DNA of 64,000 nucleotides, from sequence record MK250028.1; one strand, 5' to 3'. Under the pieces are notes generated by a model, which saw nothing but the letters and a program-made list of their open reading frames with translations, ran no database searches and was not told the origin of the DNA. Each line of letters begins with the position of its first letter. The first letter of the stretch is position 1. The position numbers and the translations under genes are program-made. Of this stretch, positions 340 through 34,920 are shown piece by piece.

Positions 340-410
340 GGGTATTTAGCTGGAAGGTCAAGCATCTGACTGTTAATCAGAAGACGTGGGTTCGATTCCC
401 TCAGTACCCG
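340..410 (+). tRNA. trnN: tRNA-Asn(GTT)
   Basis: GGGTATT/AGTACCC acceptor, TCTGA-CTGTTAA-TCAGA anticodon arm, GTTCGATTC T-loop; short D-arm. Confidence 0.9.
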
Positions 411-520
411 CAAGTTAAAAACATAACATTTTATATATGAAGGCTCGTACCTTTCAAATTCAGATGATACCGTCAAGGCGGAGATATATAATGTTTCTGA
501 ATATGTTTTTTGATGATTGA

Positions 521-1791: not shown

Positions 1792-1874
1792 GGGTGAGTG
1801 TCCCGAGTGGCAAAGGGGGCTGACTGTAAATCAGCTGTCATTTGACTTCGTAGGTTCGAGTCCTACCTCACCCA
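1792..1874 (+). tRNA. trnY: tRNA-Tyr(GTA)
   Basis: Class II cloverleaf, GCTGA-CTGTAAA-TCAGC. Confidence 0.97.
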
Positions 1875-1879
1875 CAAAT

Positions 1880-2865: not shown

Positions 2866-3026
2866 GGACCTTGCGTATGGCTGGTGCCTGTACATTGGAC
2901 TGAATTAACAGAATAAACTGTATAAAATTAATCTCTATATATTATATTTTATGGATATAAAATTATTAGTTCGATTCTAATTATAGAGACAATCCAGGGG
3001 TTGTGGTTCGATTCCACAAGGGTCCA
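2866..3026 (+). tRNA. trnF: tRNA-Phe(GAA) interrupted by an 86-nt insert (exons 2866-2904 and 2991-3026)
   Basis: Joining the exons gives a 75-nt cloverleaf with TTGGA-CTGAAAA-TCCAG, GGACCTT/AGGGTCC acceptor and TGTGG-TTCGATT-CCACA T-arm. Confidence 0.85.
2905..2990 (+). other. Putative tRNA intron with nested tRNA-like acceptor/T-arm domain
   Basis: ACAG-AATAAA-CTGT hairpin; TCTCTATA(2932-39)/TATAGAGA(2982-89) stem; ATTAG-TTCGATT-CTAAT T-arm; ends in C. Confidence 0.8.
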
Positions 3027-3078
3027 CTTTAACTGAAAAATCATATATACAGTTCGAATAAATAAAATTAATTTTATT

Positions 3079-3945
3079 ATGAATTGCGAAAATTGTGGGA
3101 AATATTATATTAAACCTATTTATGGTTCTGGACGATTTTGTTGTGGAAGTTGTAGATGTGCATATACAAATAAACATAGGAAAATATCTAACGAAACAAA
3201 AGAAAAAATATCAGAGTCATTAAAAAGGTATTATAATATAAAAAATGATATAAAAATTAAAAAATATTTTTGCGGTACATTATAGTTAAATAATGAAAAC
3301 CCTGAAATATCAAAACATTAGTCATCAAAATGGTTTAATAAATTAATACCATTTGGATTAAATATTAATACATTATATACAAAAAAATTTGTTGATGAAT
3401 ATAATAAAGTTAAAGATTTATTATATACTGAATATGTAATTAATCAATTATCACCAAAAGATATTTATATTAAATATAATTGTAAAAAATATATAAATAA
3501 TTCTGAAACTTTATTACATCTATTTAAATCATATAATTTTCCTATACGACATTTTAGTGAATCAACAACAGTATCATATTTACATGGTAAATTAAAAGGA
3601 CCCACACATACATTAGGTAAAGATTGCTATCATATTACATGGAATAATAAAAAAGTATATTTACGAAGTACATATGAATTAGATTATGCATTATATTTAG
3701 ATTCAAAACAAATTGATTATGATGTTGAATGTAAGAGAATAAAATATTATGATTCTATTAAATAGAAATATAGATGCGCAATACCAGATTTTTATATTTC
3801 AAATAAAAATTTATTAGTTGAAGTAAAATCTAATTATACATTAGATATTTAGAATATGAAAGATAAATTTAATGAATATATAAAATTAGGATATAATGTT
3901 AAATTAATACTAGAACATAAAGAAACAGATTTATATAAATTATAA
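3079..3945 (+). CDS. Free-standing PD-(D/E)xK endonuclease with N-terminal Zn finger (code 15, 4 TAG)
   Basis: Open 288 aa with TAG=Q; CENCG..YGSGRFC and PDF..LLVEVKS motifs. Confidence 0.85.
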
Positions 3946-5725: not shown

Positions 5726-5940
5726 GCTTCGATAGTTCAGTTGGTTAGAACGTCTGACTGTATACAGGAAACAACCTGATTAAATTAAACTACATAATGC
5801 TGTTAGGTATCAGACTTGCGGACGCAATATTGATTTATAACTATTATAGTAATAAATCTAAATCGCTGAAAGTTTAGTTGGTTCGAATCCAATTTATGTA
5901 GCTAATCAGAAAGTCGTAGGTTCGAGTCCTACTCGAAGCG
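5726..5940 (+). tRNA. trnN: tRNA-Asn(GTT) interrupted by a 141-nt insert (exons 5726-5761 and 5903-5940)
   Basis: Joining the exons gives a 74-nt cloverleaf with TCTGA-CTGTTAA-TCAGA (identical to tRNA-Asn at 340), a short variable loop and G73. Confidence 0.87.
5762..5902 (+). other. Putative tRNA intron with nested tRNA-like domain
   Basis: CAGG-AAACAA-CCTG hairpin; CTACATAA(5790-97)/TTATGTAG(5894-5901) stem; GTTGG-TTCGAAT-CCAAT T-arm; ends in C. Confidence 0.82.
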
Positions 5941-5945
5941 CAAAT

Positions 5946-6602
5946 ATGAGAGAAAAAGAATGTCGTATATGCCATATTCATGGTAATACATTATTTTCTT
6001 TATATACATATAATAATAAAATACATTGGGTATGTAATAAATGTTAGACAGAATATGTATAGCGACGTCGAGAACATTTAAAATTATTATCAGTTGCATA
6101 TAAAGGAAATAAATGTCAATGTTGTGGATATAATAAATGTATATCTGCATTAGAATTTCACCATATAGATCCTAATAAAAAAGAGTTTGGAATAGGATAT
6201 GCAGGTTATACACATGGATGGAATGATGTTAAATTAGAATTAGATAAATGTATTTTAGTATGCGCAAATTGTCATAGAGAAATACATGCTAATATAATAA
6301 AATGCCCAACTGAAATTATAAAAGATGAAGAAAATGTTAATATTTTATTAAATAAATTTAAATTTGATTCTATAAATAGGAATAATGATTATAAAAAATT
6401 AGTTGAAAAAATAGAACCAATTAAAAATTATACAATTCCTACAAAAGAAGAATTAATACAATTATTTAAGAAATATATTACATTTGAAAATATTGGTAGA
6501 TTATATGGTATTACAGGAAATGCCATTAAAAAATGGTGTAAAAAATATGATTTACCATATAAATCAAAAGAATTAAAAGAATATATAAATAAATTACCAT
6601 AA
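5946..6602 (+). CDS. Free-standing HNH endonuclease with C-terminal HTH-like region (code 15, 2 TAG)
   Basis: 218 aa; CQCCGY..LEFHHIDP..KCILVCANCHREIH. Confidence 0.88.
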
Positions 6603-6746: not shown

Positions 6747-6850
6747 GGGAATATCTTCTCGTTGGTATGAGAACTCTACGGTAAGTAGAGTGCATTTGCA
6801 AACCGGTTGAAATGATCTTGCTTCACAGTGTTCGAATCCTGTTGTTCCCA
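6747..6850 (+). ncRNA. Non-canonical tRNA-like RNA (GTA triplet, G33, long variable region, bulged T-stem)
   Basis: GGGAATA/TGTTCCC acceptor, TTCTC/GAGAA D-stem, CTCTA-CGGTAAG-TAGAG, ACAG(T)G-TTCGAAT-CCTGT. Confidence 0.7.
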
Positions 6851-7034: not shown

Positions 7035-8030
7035 ATGAAATAGAATTTAGAATTTTTATCAGATGACGAATTAATATAGGAATATAGAAATTGTAATTAT
7101 TCTTTAAAAGCAGTTGATAAGAAATATAATAAATCTGGAAATACTTTATTACGATTATTTAGAAAACGTAATATAGATTATAATAAGATAAAGAATGATT
7201 ATTTATTACAATAGAAACAATTTGAAGAAAGTAAAGTTTTATATTGTGAGAATTGTGGTAAAGTAATAGATGGTTATTATGGTTCTGGAAGATTTTGTAA
7301 TAGATATTGTGCAACTGCATATGGCAATTCACATAGAGCAAAAAGAACAGAAGAATCAAAAAAGAAAACATCTATTAGTGTAAAAAATTCTATTAAATGT
7401 TAGATAGCTGCTGAACGTTCAAGAAAAATATATTAGTGCAAATATTGTAATAAAGATTTTTCTGTGTTTGATATACGCAATATTAGAGGAAGAACATATT
7501 GTTCAAAAGAATGTAAACACAAATATTTATCTGCACATACTGGTGGTTATCGAGAAGGTTCTGGAAGAGGCAAACAAGGATGGTATAAAGGAATTCATTG
7601 TGATAGTTCATGGGAATTAGCATTTCTTGTTTATTATAAAGATCATAATTTAAATATAGAACGTTGTAAAGAAAAAAGGTCTTATATTTGGAATAATGAA
7701 GTTCATTCATATTATCCTGATTTTATAACAGATGACGGGATAATAGAAATAAAAGGATATTCTACAGATTAGTGGAAATTAAAAGAAAACTAGAATCCGG
7801 ATGTAAAAGTTTTATATAAAGATGATATAAAACCATATTTAGATTATGTAATAAATACATATGGTACTGATTTTATTAAATTATATGATGGTTATAATCC
7901 AAAATTAGATTTGAAAAATTATACTTATGTATGGGTTCATAATGAAAAAGAGAATCATATGATTAGAACAGAATTATATGATGAATATATAAATAATGGT
8001 TATATAAGAGGAAGAAAAACTTTTAAATAA
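7035..8030 (+). CDS. Free-standing PD-(D/E)xK endonuclease with Zn fingers (code 15), same family as 3079
   Basis: 331 aa open with TAG=Q; CENCG..YGSGRFC, DSSWELAF, YYPDF..IIEIKG. Confidence 0.85.
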
Positions 8031-8369: not shown

Positions 8370-8665
8370 TGCTGAATAATCTGTTAGCAGTGGATAAGGC
8401 ATTTAGGTTATATCTGAAAAGATATGATTTAGAGTAATCAATATTAAGAAACATAAGGTTAAAATAGCCATGGTTGGCCAACCATGAGTGACGTAAGAAA
8501 GGTCAAATCGTAGAATGGTATATGATGCTTGTAGCCTTTGAAGGTAATCAATCCTTCCGACATTTAGGAGTTAGCGTCATGAACTAACTTGTCGTGACTG
8601 AATAATGTGCTTAATATGTAATAGGGTTTGATGGTAGTCAGGAATCCATCTATGAATTCATTATT
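8370..8665 (+). ncRNA. Candidate structured ncRNA between trnT and trnM
   Basis: 18-bp perfect palindrome 8469-8486 plus several GC-rich hairpins; no ORF evident. Confidence 0.4.
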
Positions 8666-10291: not shown

Positions 10292-11065
10292 ATGAATATA
10301 ATAGGAAATTATATATATGGTTCAGAAGATTCAACTGATGTAGATATTGCATATATAGTTGATGAATTACCATCATTACAAGAATGTAAAAAGTTTTGTT
10401 CGGCTGATAAGAATGAAAACAGAAACTTAATAACGATAAATAACGGTATTATAACTAATTGTTATAAAGGAACAGTTGATGAATTAAATAATGCGATATT
10501 AGATACATATAAGTTACATGAACAAAATACAGAATTACTTATTAATAGAAAGGTTGGTAGAGATATACCATTGAAACTTATTAGAGCAATACGTGCAATG
10601 TTATCACATCTTTCTAGATCGCAATATAGAAAAGAAATAAAATTAGCATTAAGAAGTAATTGGTATAAGAGGTTAGACGTATTATTAAGTATTAATTTAG
10701 AATATATTGATTTTGATAAATTAAACAATAATATGTCAAGAGAAGATATATTGAAATTATTTGCATTTCAAATAGGTCAATGCATGGGACTTATATATGC
10801 AAGAAAAGAATTATATACAAAAAATGATGTTATTACATGGATAGGCAGTAATCTCGGTTATTGTCTTGATGATTATTTAAAACGAAAATATACAAGTTTA
10901 AATATATTAAATTATTTAAAAGATAAATTAATCTACCAGATTCGTTATAATTTTCCAGCAATAGAGTGTGATAATAATATAGTAAAATTTTTAAAGGACG
11001 GACATAATAAATATTATGATTTAATGCAGGAATGCCAAATAAATATTGAAAATAAAGATATTTAA
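10292..11065 (+). CDS. Pol-beta superfamily nucleotidyltransferase-like protein
   Basis: N-terminal YIYGS..STDVDI (GS..DxD) motif. Confidence 0.6.
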   Translation: MNIIGNYIYGSEDSTDVDIAYIVDELPSLQECKKFCSADKNENRNLITINNGIITNCYKGTVDELNNAILDTYKLHEQNTELLINRKVGRDIPLKLIRAIRAMLSHLSRSQYRKEIKLALRSNWYKRLDVLLSINLEYIDFDKLNNNMSREDILKLFAFQIGQCMGLIYARKELYTKNDVITWIGSNLGYCLDDYLKRKYTSLNILNYLKDKLIYQIRYNFPAIECDNNIVKFLKDGHNKYYDLMQECQINIENKDI

Positions 11066-15992: not shown

Positions 15993-16676
15993 ATGAAACA
16001 TTATGATTCAATAGATAATATAAAATATAATACAGAATTAGTAGGTGAACAGGTATGGGCATTTAATAAATTGGATGGACAAAATTTTTGTGCTAAATAT
16101 TCTGTAAAGAAAAAAGAATTTACAAATTTTGGTTCAAGAAAATGTATGGTAGATGAGACATCAGAACAATTTGGTGATGCTGTACGTTATTTTAAATCAC
16201 ATAATTATTCATCTATATTAAGTAATATAGTTGAAAAACATAGGAGAAAGAAAGATATATTTTATGGCGTTGATGAAATTACGTTTTTCTTCGAATGGTA
16301 TGGTGATCATAGTTTTGCAGGATTTCATTCTGAAGAAGATAAAGATAATATGCATCTTGCATTAATTGATGTGTTCATCAAAAAGAAGGGATATATTGAA
16401 CCAAAGATATATATGGATCTATTTAGAGATTGTGGAATAGAATTGCCGCAATTAGTTTATACGGGACCATTATCAAATGATTTTATTAAAGATATTCAAG
16501 AAAATGACTGGACTGAACCAAATTGTAAATTTCCTTATGTAAAGGAAGGTGTTGTAATAAGGAGATCTACTATTTTAAAAGGACAACGAATGCCTAAAGT
16601 AAAAGTTAAAACAAAATGGTGGTTAACAGAATTGCATAAGAGATATACAGAAGAAGAATGTAAATTATTAGAGTAA
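15993..16676 (+). CDS. ATP-dependent RNA ligase-like nucleotidyltransferase (Rnl2-type core)
   Basis: Motifs KLDGQN (I), FFFEWYG (III), EGVVIR (IV), KVKVK (V). Confidence 0.75.
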   Translation: MKHYDSIDNIKYNTELVGEQVWAFNKLDGQNFCAKYSVKKKEFTNFGSRKCMVDETSEQFGDAVRYFKSHNYSSILSNIVEKHRRKKDIFYGVDEITFFFEWYGDHSFAGFHSEEDKDNMHLALIDVFIKKKGYIEPKIYMDLFRDCGIELPQLVYTGPLSNDFIKDIQENDWTEPNCKFPYVKEGVVIRRSTILKGQRMPKVKVKTKWWLTELHKRYTEEECKLLE

Positions 16677-33600: not shown

Positions 33601-33714
33601 ATGATAACATTTATGAACTATATGACAAAAAATACATAGAGAACAACAGAATTCTCTGGAAGTAGTGAAATAGACGAAAACACATTACAAAAAAATAGTA
33701 ATAATGATAAATGA
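30625..33714 (+). CDS. Baseplate hub-like protein fused to a C-terminal M15/LAS Zn peptidase (code 15, 1029 aa)
   Basis: One frame joins four ORF-track fragments via TAG=Q; GWY.IDGI..VKLVRREWP hub-like end; SHLYGEAID and HYH peptidase motifs. Confidence 0.7.
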
Positions 33715-33718
33715 AAAT

Positions 33719-33750
33719 AAGGGAATAGATTACAAATATCTATTCCCTTT
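33719..33750. terminator. Bidirectional terminator at the + / - block junction
   Basis: AAGGGAATAGAT/ATCTATTCCCTT. Confidence 0.8.
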
Positions 33751-33756
33751 ATTATA

Positions 33757-34722
33757 TTAAATATGTTTTCTTTTTAATATTTGAATAAATTCATCTTCAG
33801 TTATTTGAGCACCTGCTGCACCTTCATGTCCTCCACCATGATAATATTCTTGAAGATATTTACCACAATGGAATTCATGTGTATCTGTAGGATTATACAA
33901 TGAAATTGCCCACATACCATCAGGTAATCTCTTAAATACAATACCGTTTTTGATTTTATCTTTACATGTTTTAAATATCTGTGAATTTGTTGGTTTCTGA
34001 ATAAACAAAGCACATGCAGATCGATTATCAAATCCTACAGTCCATGTAAAATCACCATATGAATTAATGAGGTTCTTATTGTTTCTATCAATAATCTCTG
34101 ATTCTAACTTACCTAATTCTTTAAGTTTCCCTAGTTCACATGCTAATTCTTCTGGTTTTGCTTGATATATTATATAATATACATGATTAATAATTTCACT
34201 TACATTTAAATCATATTTATTATTAACACCAATGTTTACATATCTACAAAAATCAAAATTAATATTCTCCGCATCATAACTCCAGCTATCCCATGCAGAC
34301 AATACTTTAAACAAATCCGGTATTCTTCCAATAAAATTATACAAATAGCTAAAAGCATTATATAATGCAGAATGATCGATTGTCCTTAAACCCTGAATAT
34401 CGTCAAAATGTAATTCTTTTGAACTATTAATCATAGGCGCATGATGGTCAAACCAATATAGTTTATCACCAAAATGTTTTTTCAGTTTAAGCATTGTTTC
34501 TGCTGTATCAAACGAAATATCTGATATATAAACATAATCATATACACCTATAATATCATTTTGAATATTTAAGTTCTCCATCCCATTATAATCTTCACCT
34601 AATAGTGTGATCATATTTGGATGTATTCCTTTTTCAATTACAAGAAAATTATATATGATAGCCATCGAAAATAAACCATCATTATCTTCCTTGTGATATA
34701 TAATTAAATATTTGTCATCCAT
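33757..34722 (-). CDS. DHH/DHHA1 family phosphoesterase
   Basis: YH.EDNDG, FDHH, GGGHEGAAG. Confidence 0.85.
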   Translation of the reverse strand: MDDKYLIIYHKEDNDGLFSMAIIYNFLVIEKGIHPNMITLLGEDYNGMENLNIQNDIIGVYDYVYISDISFDTAETMLKLKKHFGDKLYWFDHHAPMINSSKELHFDDIQGLRTIDHSALYNAFSYLYNFIGRIPDLFKVLSAWDSWSYDAENINFDFCRYVNIGVNNKYDLNVSEIINHVYYIIYQAKPEELACELGKLKELGKLESEIIDRNNKNLINSYGDFTWTVGFDNRSACALFIQKPTNSQIFKTCKDKIKNGIVFKRLPDGMWAISLYNPTDTHEFHCGKYLQEYYHGGGHEGAAGAQITEDEFIQILKRKHI

Positions 34723-34734
34723 TATATTATTAAT

Positions 34735-34920
34735 TTAATAATTAGTTTTCTGTTTCTCTAACATTTCTATTGCTTTTGCTTGTCTATCTACTGTCTCTTG
34801 AAGTTGTTCACACTTATATTTGTAATAATGAGCTTCACCAGCTGCAATCAATATACAAACACATGTAAGTCCCAATATATAAATATCAAGCTTATTAAAA
34901 ATCTTTTTTATTGTTTCCAT
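34735..34920 (-). CDS. Small membrane-anchored coiled-coil protein
   Basis: TM segment followed by a coiled coil. Confidence 0.6.
   Translation of the reverse strand: METIKKIFNKLDIYILGLTCVCILIAAGEAHYYKYKCEQLQETVDRQAKAIEMLEKQKTNY

Follow-up and report, generated by a model that had tools for sequence, protein, structure and literature searches.

A structured intron with a tRNA-like module in a tRNA-Asn gene of the Prevotella megaphage Lak-B

To our knowledge, the tRNA introns described so far in bacteria and their phages are self-splicing group I introns, and the splicing of tRNA introns by proteins is considered to be a feature of archaea and eukaryotes. Here we analyze a 141-nucleotide (nt) intron in a tRNA-Asn(GUU) gene that lies within a 64,000-nt stretch of sequence record MK250028.1 (the whole stretch is referred to below as the window), which comes from the Prevotella megaphage Lak-B. 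This intron belongs to a family of Lak tRNA introns that fit neither the group I class nor the protein-spliced class and that have been "enigmatic" since 2019. With the bacterial group I introns in tRNA genes, such as those in Azoarcus tRNA-Ile and cyanobacterial tRNA-Leu, the Lak introns share a location in the anticodon loop, the lack of an open reading frame (ORF), and a patchy presence among relatives, but they have no terminal G and no P3-P9 core, reach only one-third to one-half of the minimum size, and have no Rfam match. Archaeal tRNA introns, which are cut and sealed by proteins, are known to transpose in Thermoproteales, and the one in tRNA-Trp encodes a box C/D RNA. Like these, the Lak introns are short, occupy noncanonical positions, are spread over several isotypes, and can carry a structured RNA; unlike these, they have no bulge-helix-bulge, reside in a bacterial virus without a known EndA, and probably leave different ends (a 3'-OH and a 5'-phosphate, if the cut is of the RNase Z type).

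A tRNA-like fold also serves as a processing signal in other transcripts, as in MALAT1 mascRNA. The t-elements of plant mitochondria are of the same sort, with a nondecoding tRNA-like fold that lies in a longer transcript and whose ends are cut by RNase P and RNase Z (PMC1920247). Such elements define transcript ends, whereas the flanks of a Lak intron would need to be rejoined, and the Lak introns have an additional 5' hairpin and linker. Sealing of an anticodon loop is known from phage T4, in which the break made by PrrC is healed by Pnkp and sealed by Rnl1 (Iyer et al. 2021, PMC7824862). Lak phages likewise have an RNA ligase, together with a CCA-adding enzyme and Thg1; however, the T4 system repairs damage inflicted by the host, whereas the Lak insert is encoded, and the Lak ligase is of the Rnl2 type and not Rnl1.

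The Lak introns were reported by Devoto et al. 2019 (Nat Microbiol, PMC6784885) in a section on Lak tRNAs with highly conserved "enigmatic" introns. Table S6 of that paper lists introns in the A1 "Tyr(GTA)," Phe(GAA), and Thr(TGT) genes and in A2 Gly(TCC), and "related but longer introns" are mentioned for the "Tyr(GTA)" gene of B-Lak genomes. The "Tyr(GTA)" intron is described there as having "no hit in rfam," the Thr intron alone is said to possibly encode a tRNA, one tRNA intron is counted in B-Lak, and the Phe intron is listed for A1, A2, and the cholera and pig cohorts only. The 141-nt insert is the same object as the B-Lak "Tyr(GTA)" intron, and the locus has thus been known since 2019; the original prediction, made for this DNA from its letters, was right that the insert is real and unaware that it had been published. 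The published introns share with those described below the anticodon-loop site and homology, but the paper contains neither a shared layout nor a link to the ends of Lak tRNA genes, at which the discriminator N73 is followed by C74. A Lys member and a 129-nt variant are absent from Table S6, and the window holds two introns, compared with the one counted. New here are the Asn identity and the junction between nucleotides 35 and 36 (35/36), a layout backed by covariation, and the coincidence of the 3' junction with N73-C74. The Phe intron, as the second in B-Lak, Lys as the fifth isotype, and the 129-nt variant are added to the family, together with evidence for mobility and for selection on the interrupted genes.

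The interrupted gene and the layout of its intron

The window region is 100% identical to Lak-B1 and its relatives (~550 kb, 26% G+C), and its ORFs are coherent only if TAG is read as Gln, a reading that has already been published for Lak phages. The first 15 kb are occupied by a tRNA array, with 17 tRNAs called by ARAGORN and small endonuclease genes scattered through it. Within this array, positions 5726 to 5940 of the plus strand (5941 if C74 is counted) form a class-I tRNA-Asn(GUU) gene that is split by the 141-nt intron (5762 to 5902, plus strand) between nucleotides 35 and 36, the outer gene reading GCTTCGA...CTGT, then the 141 nt, then TAATCAGA...TCGAAGC-G. Exon 1 (5726 to 5761) comprises the acceptor 5' strand, the D arm, the 5' strand of the anticodon stem, and the loop nucleotides C32, U33, G34, and U35; exon 2 (5903 to 5941) comprises U36, A37, and A38, the 3' strand of the anticodon stem, the T arm, the acceptor 3' strand, G73 (5940), and C74 (5941). 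Taking out the intron restores the 7-nt anticodon loop CTGTTAA with its GUU anticodon. The junction expected in the RNA is GACUGU/UAAUCAG, and in its exon context (...GTTAGAACGTCTGACTGT/TAATCAGAAAGTCGTAGG...) the spliced junction can be distinguished from the insert-free tRNA-Asn(GUU) paralogue at 340 to 411 (plus strand).

The boundaries of the intron are fixed by an empty site, since the syntenic orthologue in Lak-A1, Lak-C1, and the IMG/VR contig L135 is uninterrupted and reads CTGTTAA; furthermore, the insert starts with A, ends with C, and is flanked by two T's, so that only a single placement is possible. The Asn identity, the 35/36 junction left by removal of 5762 to 5902, and the insert-free Asn gene at 340 had all been predicted, and the empty sites and the intact gene at 340 to 411 bear them out, as the sequence does the positions given for the elements within the insert. 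The published Tyr(GTA) call is explained by the eukaryote mode of tRNAscan, which puts introns at 37/38 and thus reads CTGTATA. The outer tRNA body is of class I with G73, whereas the real tRNA-Tyr of the window (1792 to 1875) is of class II with A73. An assembly artifact can be dismissed, since the 141-nt insert, in which a single base is polymorphic, is carried by nine Lak-B genomes, by four contigs from IMG/VR, and by an independent ENA assembly of 546,763 bp.

The intron begins with a 5' element (5762 to 5778), in which AUA (5762 to 5764) is followed by a hairpin with CAGG (5765 to 5768) and CCUG (5775 to 5778) around an AAACAA loop, and continues with the 11-nt A/U linker AUUAAAUUAAA (5779 to 5789). 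The acceptor-like 5' strand CTACATAA (5790 to 5797) then pairs with the 3' strand TTATGTAG (5894 to 5901), with compensatory changes in relatives, in a stem that can be read as 8 bp or as N-1 plus 7 bp. A variable middle (5798 to 5876) contains a D-like hairpin and a long arm but no anticodon loop; the D-like arm pairs CTG (5800 to 5802) with CAG (5811 to 5813) and has GG in its loop, and the long arm is closed by ACUU (5814 to 5817) and AAGU (5870 to 5873). The middle is followed by the T arm GUUGG-UUCGAAU-CCAAU (5877 to 5893) and by UUAUGUAG (5894 to 5902), that is, the acceptor-like 3' strand and a terminal C (5902), which are read as N73 = G followed by C74, with the 3' splice site directly after C74. 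All these features are on the plus strand, and the interior of the intron is without an ORF. The folding energy of the insert has a z-score of -2.66, with 2 of 200 shuffles folding equally well. A TTGC/GCAA hairpin (from 5816 and from 5824) and a GATTTAT/ATAAATC hairpin (from 5832 and from 5852) are present as had been predicted, but they are carried by a nonconserved, lineage-specific expansion of ~48 nt of the middle, which is missing from the 93-nt Lak-A version of the intron and different in the 129-nt version.

Eight distinct introns of 79 to 141 nt, from five tRNA types (Asn at 35/36 and Phe, Thr, Gly, and Lys at 36/37), have an identical order of parts: WUA, a hairpin, an A/U linker, an 8-bp acceptor-like stem, the middle, a 5-bp T stem, the acceptor 3' strand, C, and then exon 2. 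This shared layout was defined in the present analysis and not by Devoto et al., and the Lak-B Asn intron conforms to it. Across the family, the 5' hairpin has 4 to 5 bp and a six-base loop (AAACAA, AAAAAA, AAUAAA, or AGUAAA; consensus, ARUAAA), and the linker consists of 10 to 12 nt of A/U, with the core AAAUUAAA at its end in the Asn, Lys, Gly, and Thr introns and AAAUUAA or AAAUCAA in the Phe introns. The length of the middle ranges between 18 and 79 nt, the T loop reads UUCGNNU, with UUCGAWU as its consensus, and in 8 of 8 modules the first hairpin to follow the acceptor strand has GG in its loop. A second family member in the window interrupts tRNA-Phe(GAA) (2866 to 3027, plus strand) with an 86-nt intron (2905 to 2990) at 36/37, the boundaries of which are fixed by uninterrupted genes reading CTGAAAA in the Lak contigs L010 and L013. 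The 93-nt intron, found in the other Asn paralogue in Lak-A/C, is 96.7% identical to the 141-nt intron over the shared 64% of the query, and one sequence (L004), recovered independently, is the A1 "Tyr(GTA)" entry of Table S6 in Devoto et al.

A descriptor of this layout recovered all known family members; in the window it matched the two introns and one ordinary tRNA, compared with 1 match in 20 shuffled windows (both strands). A tight motif scan of a metagenome collection yielded 77 matches, 17 of which are true loci, all in Lak-type tRNA exons; these include the 129-nt Asn variant, a tRNA-Lys(UUU) with an 87-nt insert, and Gly and Thr introns in variant form. The tight motif gave 24 matches and no true locus in a set of 185,579 species genomes from bacteria and archaea, a result that applies to AAATTAAACT-type members only, the motif scans being blind to members without the AAATTAAACT linker. 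A loose motif run on IMG/VR gave chance matches only, among the matches listed. Two fragments were also seen. On the minus strand of L163, an 8.6-kb contig, positions 1398 to 1551 contain a Glu-like tRNA 5' half (...TTTTC) and, behind it, ATA-GCAG-AATAAA-CTGC with an A/T linker that leads into a genuine tRNA-Asn(GTT). A matching exon 2 is absent from the contig, and the whole looks like a broken or rearranged family member. Positions 416 to 450 of a metagenome contig with 31% G+C (L153) lie outside tRNA genes and are near-identical to the 5' part of the Gly intron (ATACAAGAATAAA.TGTATAAAATTAAACTATATGC), possibly as an intron fragment.

The original prediction had described the insert as a tRNA inside a tRNA. 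The acceptor-like stem and the T arm with its TTCGAAT loop hold up, with compensatory changes in relatives; as in a tRNA, the acceptor stem and a T arm whose loop fits UUCRANU form a stack, and the GG that the D loop needs for the tRNA elbow is present. A nested full tRNA does not hold up, since the arm of the inner module is a long helix without a 7-nt anticodon loop and since the module went unscored by both ARAGORN and the Rfam tRNA model, even with the region isolated and E ≤ 10 allowed. The inner module corresponds to the "top half" of a tRNA and is tRNA-like without being a tRNA. We regard it as very improbable that the family nests a genuine decoding tRNA in a tRNA gene, even though the Thr module has a full D arm and is called as a tRNA by ARAGORN (His, anticodon atg), Devoto et al. 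report an Rfam tRNA match for the Thr intron, and a real tRNA-Asn comes after the intron 5' element in the L163 remnant. The modules examined have no 7-nt anticodon loop: the Thr arm is capped by a GAGA or GAAA tetraloop, that of the 93-nt Asn version has a tiny loop, and in the Phe module, with its 18-nt middle, the arm is missing and a single small hairpin separates the acceptor strand from the T arm.

Covariation, mobility, and selection on the exons

The 5' hairpin was predicted in 7 of the 7 family members folded, and in the alignment it is 100% paired, with changes on both sides in 4 of 4 pairs and a score reached by 0 of 500 shuffles. In the acceptor and T stems, 8 of 13 pairs have changed on both sides, a score likewise reached by none of 500 shuffles. 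The acceptor pairs were counted by hand because MAFFT moved the Phe rows by one column, and all acceptor and T cells checked in this way pair except for one U-U. The hairpin loop, the linker, and the T loop are constant while the stems vary, which is the signature of a functional RNA, and we are confident that the layout of the family is fixed and under selection. Two additional pairings were considered and dropped. Pairing of WUA with the linker, which would lengthen the hairpin to the 5' junction, is not conserved, and pairing of the linker with the segment before the T stem is found in the 93- and 141-nt Asn versions only and is probably due to chance.

The location of the Asn intron is reciprocal between lineages, in that Lak-A/C carry it in the paralogue that is intact in Lak-B and vice versa; the Lak-A/C orthologue of the insert-free gene at 340 to 411 has the 93-nt intron at the same 35/36 site. 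Copies of the 93-nt intron that are identical or 1 base apart are found in Asn genes with entirely different acceptor stems (GGGAATA and GCTCAGA). Because near-identical copies reside in diverged Asn genes and the paralogues are swapped, the intron is mobile. Closely related 5' elements are also found in the Asn and Lys introns. Taken together, the segment from 5762 to 5902 is very probably a genuine intron of the tRNA-Asn gene that is structured and mobile and belongs to the published Lak family.

The Lak-B intron of 141 nt and the 129-nt intron of contigs L192 and L212 occupy the same Asn paralogue and share the expansion ACTTGC...ATTGATTTAT...GAAAGT, and they are therefore orthologous. Their exons show three compensatory pair differences, and over four lineages the outer cloverleaf pairs in 84 of 84 stem cells, with 7 pairs changed on both sides, a pattern that argues for structural selection on the outer tRNA while it is interrupted. 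Similarly, a compensatory change of one T-stem pair separates the Phe exons of Lak-B from those of Lak-A, and both lineages carry diverged orthologous introns. Removal of the intron restores an exact 7-nt loop in five isotypes, and no second Phe gene was found by ARAGORN within the window. Splicing is favored indirectly by the exact loop restoration, by the compensatory exon changes in Asn and Phe, and by the lack of a second Phe gene in the window.

These observations bear on the alternative that the insert is an unspliced selfish or payload element, whose product would be the inner RNA, cut out by RNase P and RNase Z, with the outer halves being discarded. It would suit such an element that each genome keeps an intact Asn paralogue, that the intron is better conserved than the exons and clearly mobile, that the module ends exactly like a Lak tRNA, and that the broken L163 copy is without exon 2. 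However, the exons of the interrupted genes keep a perfect cloverleaf via compensatory changes, those of Phe having changed in this way between two lineages that both carry introns, and insertions are found only at 35/36 and 36/37 in five isotypes, always with an exact 7-nt loop upon removal. With no second Phe gene called by ARAGORN in the window as well, we consider this alternative rather unlikely.

The 3' splice site and a proposed route of removal

The Lak introns are distant from group I, group II, and bulge-helix-bulge introns, whose defining features, where tested, fail. No match to group I, group II, or a known ribozyme was obtained with Rfam at E ≤ 1 over 16 kb or at E ≤ 10 on the isolated region. 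A group I intron has a terminal G, whereas all members of the Lak family end in C and the empty sites leave no room for a boundary shift; the P3-P9 core was not found by the Rfam model, and the exon-1 terminal U is not general, exon 1 ending in U in Asn, Thr, and Lys, in A in Phe, and in C in Gly. A P1-like guide pairing between the 5' strand of the hairpin and exon-1 nt 32 to 34 was also considered, as N34 covaries with the hairpin in Asn, Phe, Thr, and Gly; this idea was dropped because the Lys(UUU) intron has the same CAGG hairpin as the Asn intron and breaks the pairing. A group II intron (5' GUGYG, 3' AY, and domain V) is at odds with introns that start with WUA, end in C, and have no Rfam match. 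As for a bulge-helix-bulge (two 3-nt bulges and a 4-bp helix), a reading of the sequence by eye places the 5' site 3 nt before the 4-bp hairpin and shows no helix that would join the intron end to nt 32 to 35. EndA/Sen was not found in the searched part of the published Lak-A1 annotation; no whole-genome scan was made.

The insert might nonetheless belong to one of the known classes, being either a group I intron or an archaeal-type bulge-helix-bulge intron that is cut by the splicing endonuclease. The anticodon-loop location, the spread between tRNA isotypes, which is also known for archaeal introns, and, for Asn, the terminal U of exon 1 and a possible pairing of this exon with ACAG in the intron 5' end would agree with this. 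Against it stand the terminal C in place of G, the size of 79 to 141 nt, the silence of the Rfam group I and II models, the absence of the conserved U-G pair where exon 1 ends in A (Phe) or C (Gly), the 5' site on the wrong side of the 4-bp helix, the inability of A37/A38 to lengthen the outer helix, and the failure of the guide-sequence idea in the Lys intron. This explanation is already largely refuted, and we give it hardly any weight.

A different clue is provided by the 3' ends of the Lak tRNA genes. All 19 tRNA genes of the window, including the two that are interrupted, end with the discriminator N73 and a C (background C frequency, 0.136). Positions 411, 1462, and 5941, for example, are tRNA 3' ends with a single C; tRNA-Val alone has CC, and the full CCA is encoded in none. 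The N73-plus-C pattern is also found in another Lak lineage and suggests that Lak phages follow an unusual rule in maturing tRNA 3' ends or that the pattern is a determinant for RNase P. The inner modules read alike, with a 7-bp acceptor stem, a purine N73 (paired with N-1), C74, and exon 2 at the next base, and hence the 3' splice site is located where Lak tRNA genes stop encoding their 3' ends. In ending with N73-C74 like 19 of 19 window tRNAs, the module resembles a signal of the t-element/mascRNA type, with cleavage by RNase P and RNase Z itself being putative. The position of the junction in the outer tRNA varies with the intron (35/36 in Asn and 36/37 in the other four isotypes), and the cut sites thus are set by the structure of the intron and not measured from the mature tRNA body.

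We propose that excision is protein dependent and borrows the tRNA end-maturation enzymes and a phage RNA ligase, a reading to which we assign a probability of roughly 0.35 to 0.4. The conserved parts of the module, with stacked acceptor and T helices, a T loop, a GG loop, and N73-C74, are what RNase P, RNase Z, and the CCA-adding enzyme recognize in a tRNA. In the proposed scheme, the tRNA-like module would show the 3' splice site to the endonuclease that makes all Lak tRNA 3' ends (RNase Z type, leaving a 3'-OH and a 5'-phosphate), and the cut at the 3' end of the module would provide exon 2 with a 5'-phosphate; RNase P may cut the 5' end of the module. Exon 1 would acquire its 3'-OH from a second, hydrolytic cut, made between N and WUA and thus 3 nt ahead of the hairpin, and the conserved U at +2 in a single-stranded A/U context by a hairpin would be a loose fit to an RNase E/G-type enzyme. 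The exons would be held together by the outer tRNA body, and the anticodon loop would be sealed by the phage ATP-dependent RNA ligase, as ends with a 3'-OH and a 5'-phosphate fit the requirement of an Rnl-type enzyme. The freed module could persist as a CCA-tailed tRNA-like RNA.

The candidate exon-sealing enzyme is encoded at the end of the tRNA array (15993 to 16676, plus strand) and is a phage RNA ligase with an Rnl2-type nucleotidyltransferase domain and a KxDG motif (Pfam PF09414, E = 4e-8, above the curated cutoff; phrog_548 "RNA ligase," E = 1.9e-12). A copy in L135 is 92% identical over 146 aligned residues, and the locus ends there; the annotation of Lak-A1 lists T4 Rnl2, a CCA-adding enzyme, and Thg1. 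Protein Data Bank sequence searches with the ligase, with a putative nucleotidyltransferase, and with a PD-(D/E)XK-like protein, the latter two described below, returned nothing informative.

Several points weigh against this scheme. The 5' cut is explained by the geometry of neither RNase P nor RNase Z, and no enzyme can be assigned to it; the fit to RNase E/G consists of a 3-nt consensus and the rule that these enzymes cut within RNWUU, between N and W. Canonical RNase Z cuts after N73 and not after C74, and C74 might instead be an RNase P determinant. If N-1 and N73 pair, the acceptor and T stack is 13 bp long, compared with the canonical 12 bp, and Rnl2-type ligases favor nicks in duplex RNA over anticodon loops. 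As to splicing as such, one intact Asn copy is kept per genome (340 to 411 in Lak-B and the other copy in Lak-A/C), and the broken copy in L163 consists of a 5' tRNA half and an intron 5' element without exon 2. The identical 93-nt intron in diverged genes could reflect very recent invasions, which would weaken the argument from exon function for that copy. Finally, Devoto et al. report no splicing or RNA data, and no later work on intron removal was found in the literature.

The insert might also be a new small self-cleaving or self-splicing RNA that cuts both junctions and either ligates the exons itself or leaves this step to a ligase of the host or the phage. Ribozymes typically have conserved single strands between covarying helices, as seen here, the intron and not the tRNA determines where the splice sites lie, and no splicing endonuclease is annotated in the searched part of the Lak-A1 annotation. 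However, the conserved core can be reduced, as in the 79-nt Phe intron, to ~60 nt and a variable hairpin of 18 nt, Rfam yields no match to a known ribozyme family even at relaxed thresholds, and the C at the 3' end of the intron excludes group I chemistry. Moreover, the conserved parts, namely, the T loop, the GG loop, and N73-C74, are tRNA features recognized by proteins, and a ribozyme therefore appears improbable to us.

Neighboring genes and implications

An HNH endonuclease gene (5946 to 6602, plus strand; TAG read as Gln) lies directly 3' of the tRNA-Asn gene and probably encodes a free-standing homing endonuclease. "Collaborative homing" of the intron and this gene was considered and rejected; the gene, with 70% identity, also adjoins the intron-free orthologue in Lak-A/C and L135, and for this reason a role of the HNH protein in the spread of the intron is doubtful. 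Four endonuclease-like genes are located among the tRNAs (1880 to 2296, 3079 to 3945, 5946 to 6602, and 7035 to 8030), two of which are HNH genes; the other two are paralogous and combine a zinc ribbon at the N terminus with a PD-(D/E)XK-like motif (PDF...E[VI]K) at the C terminus. Each intron-bearing tRNA gene has one of the four just downstream. The 17-nt anticodon arm TCTGACTGTTAATCAGA is the same in both Lak-B Asn paralogues, at 340 to 411 and 5726 to 5940, but in Lak-A the orthologue of the 340-to-411 copy has AGAGA/TCTCT in its place. This suggests gene conversion between the Lak-B paralogues, possibly tied to intron loss.

Other unusual tRNA-like genes are found in the same array. A 237-nt gene at 2403 to 2640 has a tRNA-type acceptor stem, the T arm GGTTCGAATCC, an N73-C end, and a huge interior, which is not of the intron type described above. 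In the Lak lineage L135 the gene is 90% identical, its acceptor and T stems having changed in a compensatory manner, and it is called by neither Rfam nor ARAGORN. Both programs also miss a tRNA-like gene of ~205 nt at ~845 to 1050, with a purine-rich interior and a T arm and acceptor strand at its end, and they are silent on a 104-nt tRNA-like gene at ~6747 to 6850, which has a 6-bp stem with a 5-nt loop in the place of the anticodon arm, a long extra arm, and likewise a T arm and acceptor strand at its end. Between tRNA-Thr and tRNA-Met, positions 8371 to 8557 and 8569 to 8660 give subthreshold matches to the manA RNA motif (E = 0.13 and 0.31), which may be due to chance. The 257-amino-acid protein encoded at 10292 to 11065, which begins ...YGSEDSTDVDIAY, has a GS...DxD motif typical of Pol-beta-type nucleotidyltransferases but no Pfam, PHROG, or PDB sequence match, and it could be a ligase-associated nucleotidyltransferase of the kind described by Iyer et al. 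2021 (PMC7824862). Further along the window, at ~33700 to 34900, the GC skew changes from ~+0.24 to -0.25, and the coding strand switches from plus to minus at the same place.

If the insert is never removed, the locus is an ordinary disrupted duplicate of low interest. We suggest, tentatively and as a doubtful proposition at present, that the Lak introns represent a third mechanistic class of tRNA introns, in which an embedded module recruits the end-maturation nucleases and a viral ligase acting on a 3'-OH and a 5'-phosphate reseals the loop. If true, a bacterial system that lacks a bulge-helix-bulge endonuclease would splice tRNAs by means of proteins alone, with a stable tRNA-like RNA being freed as a by-product or as a payload, and this would provide a new route for introns to live in tRNA genes and a new use for phage RNA-repair enzymes.

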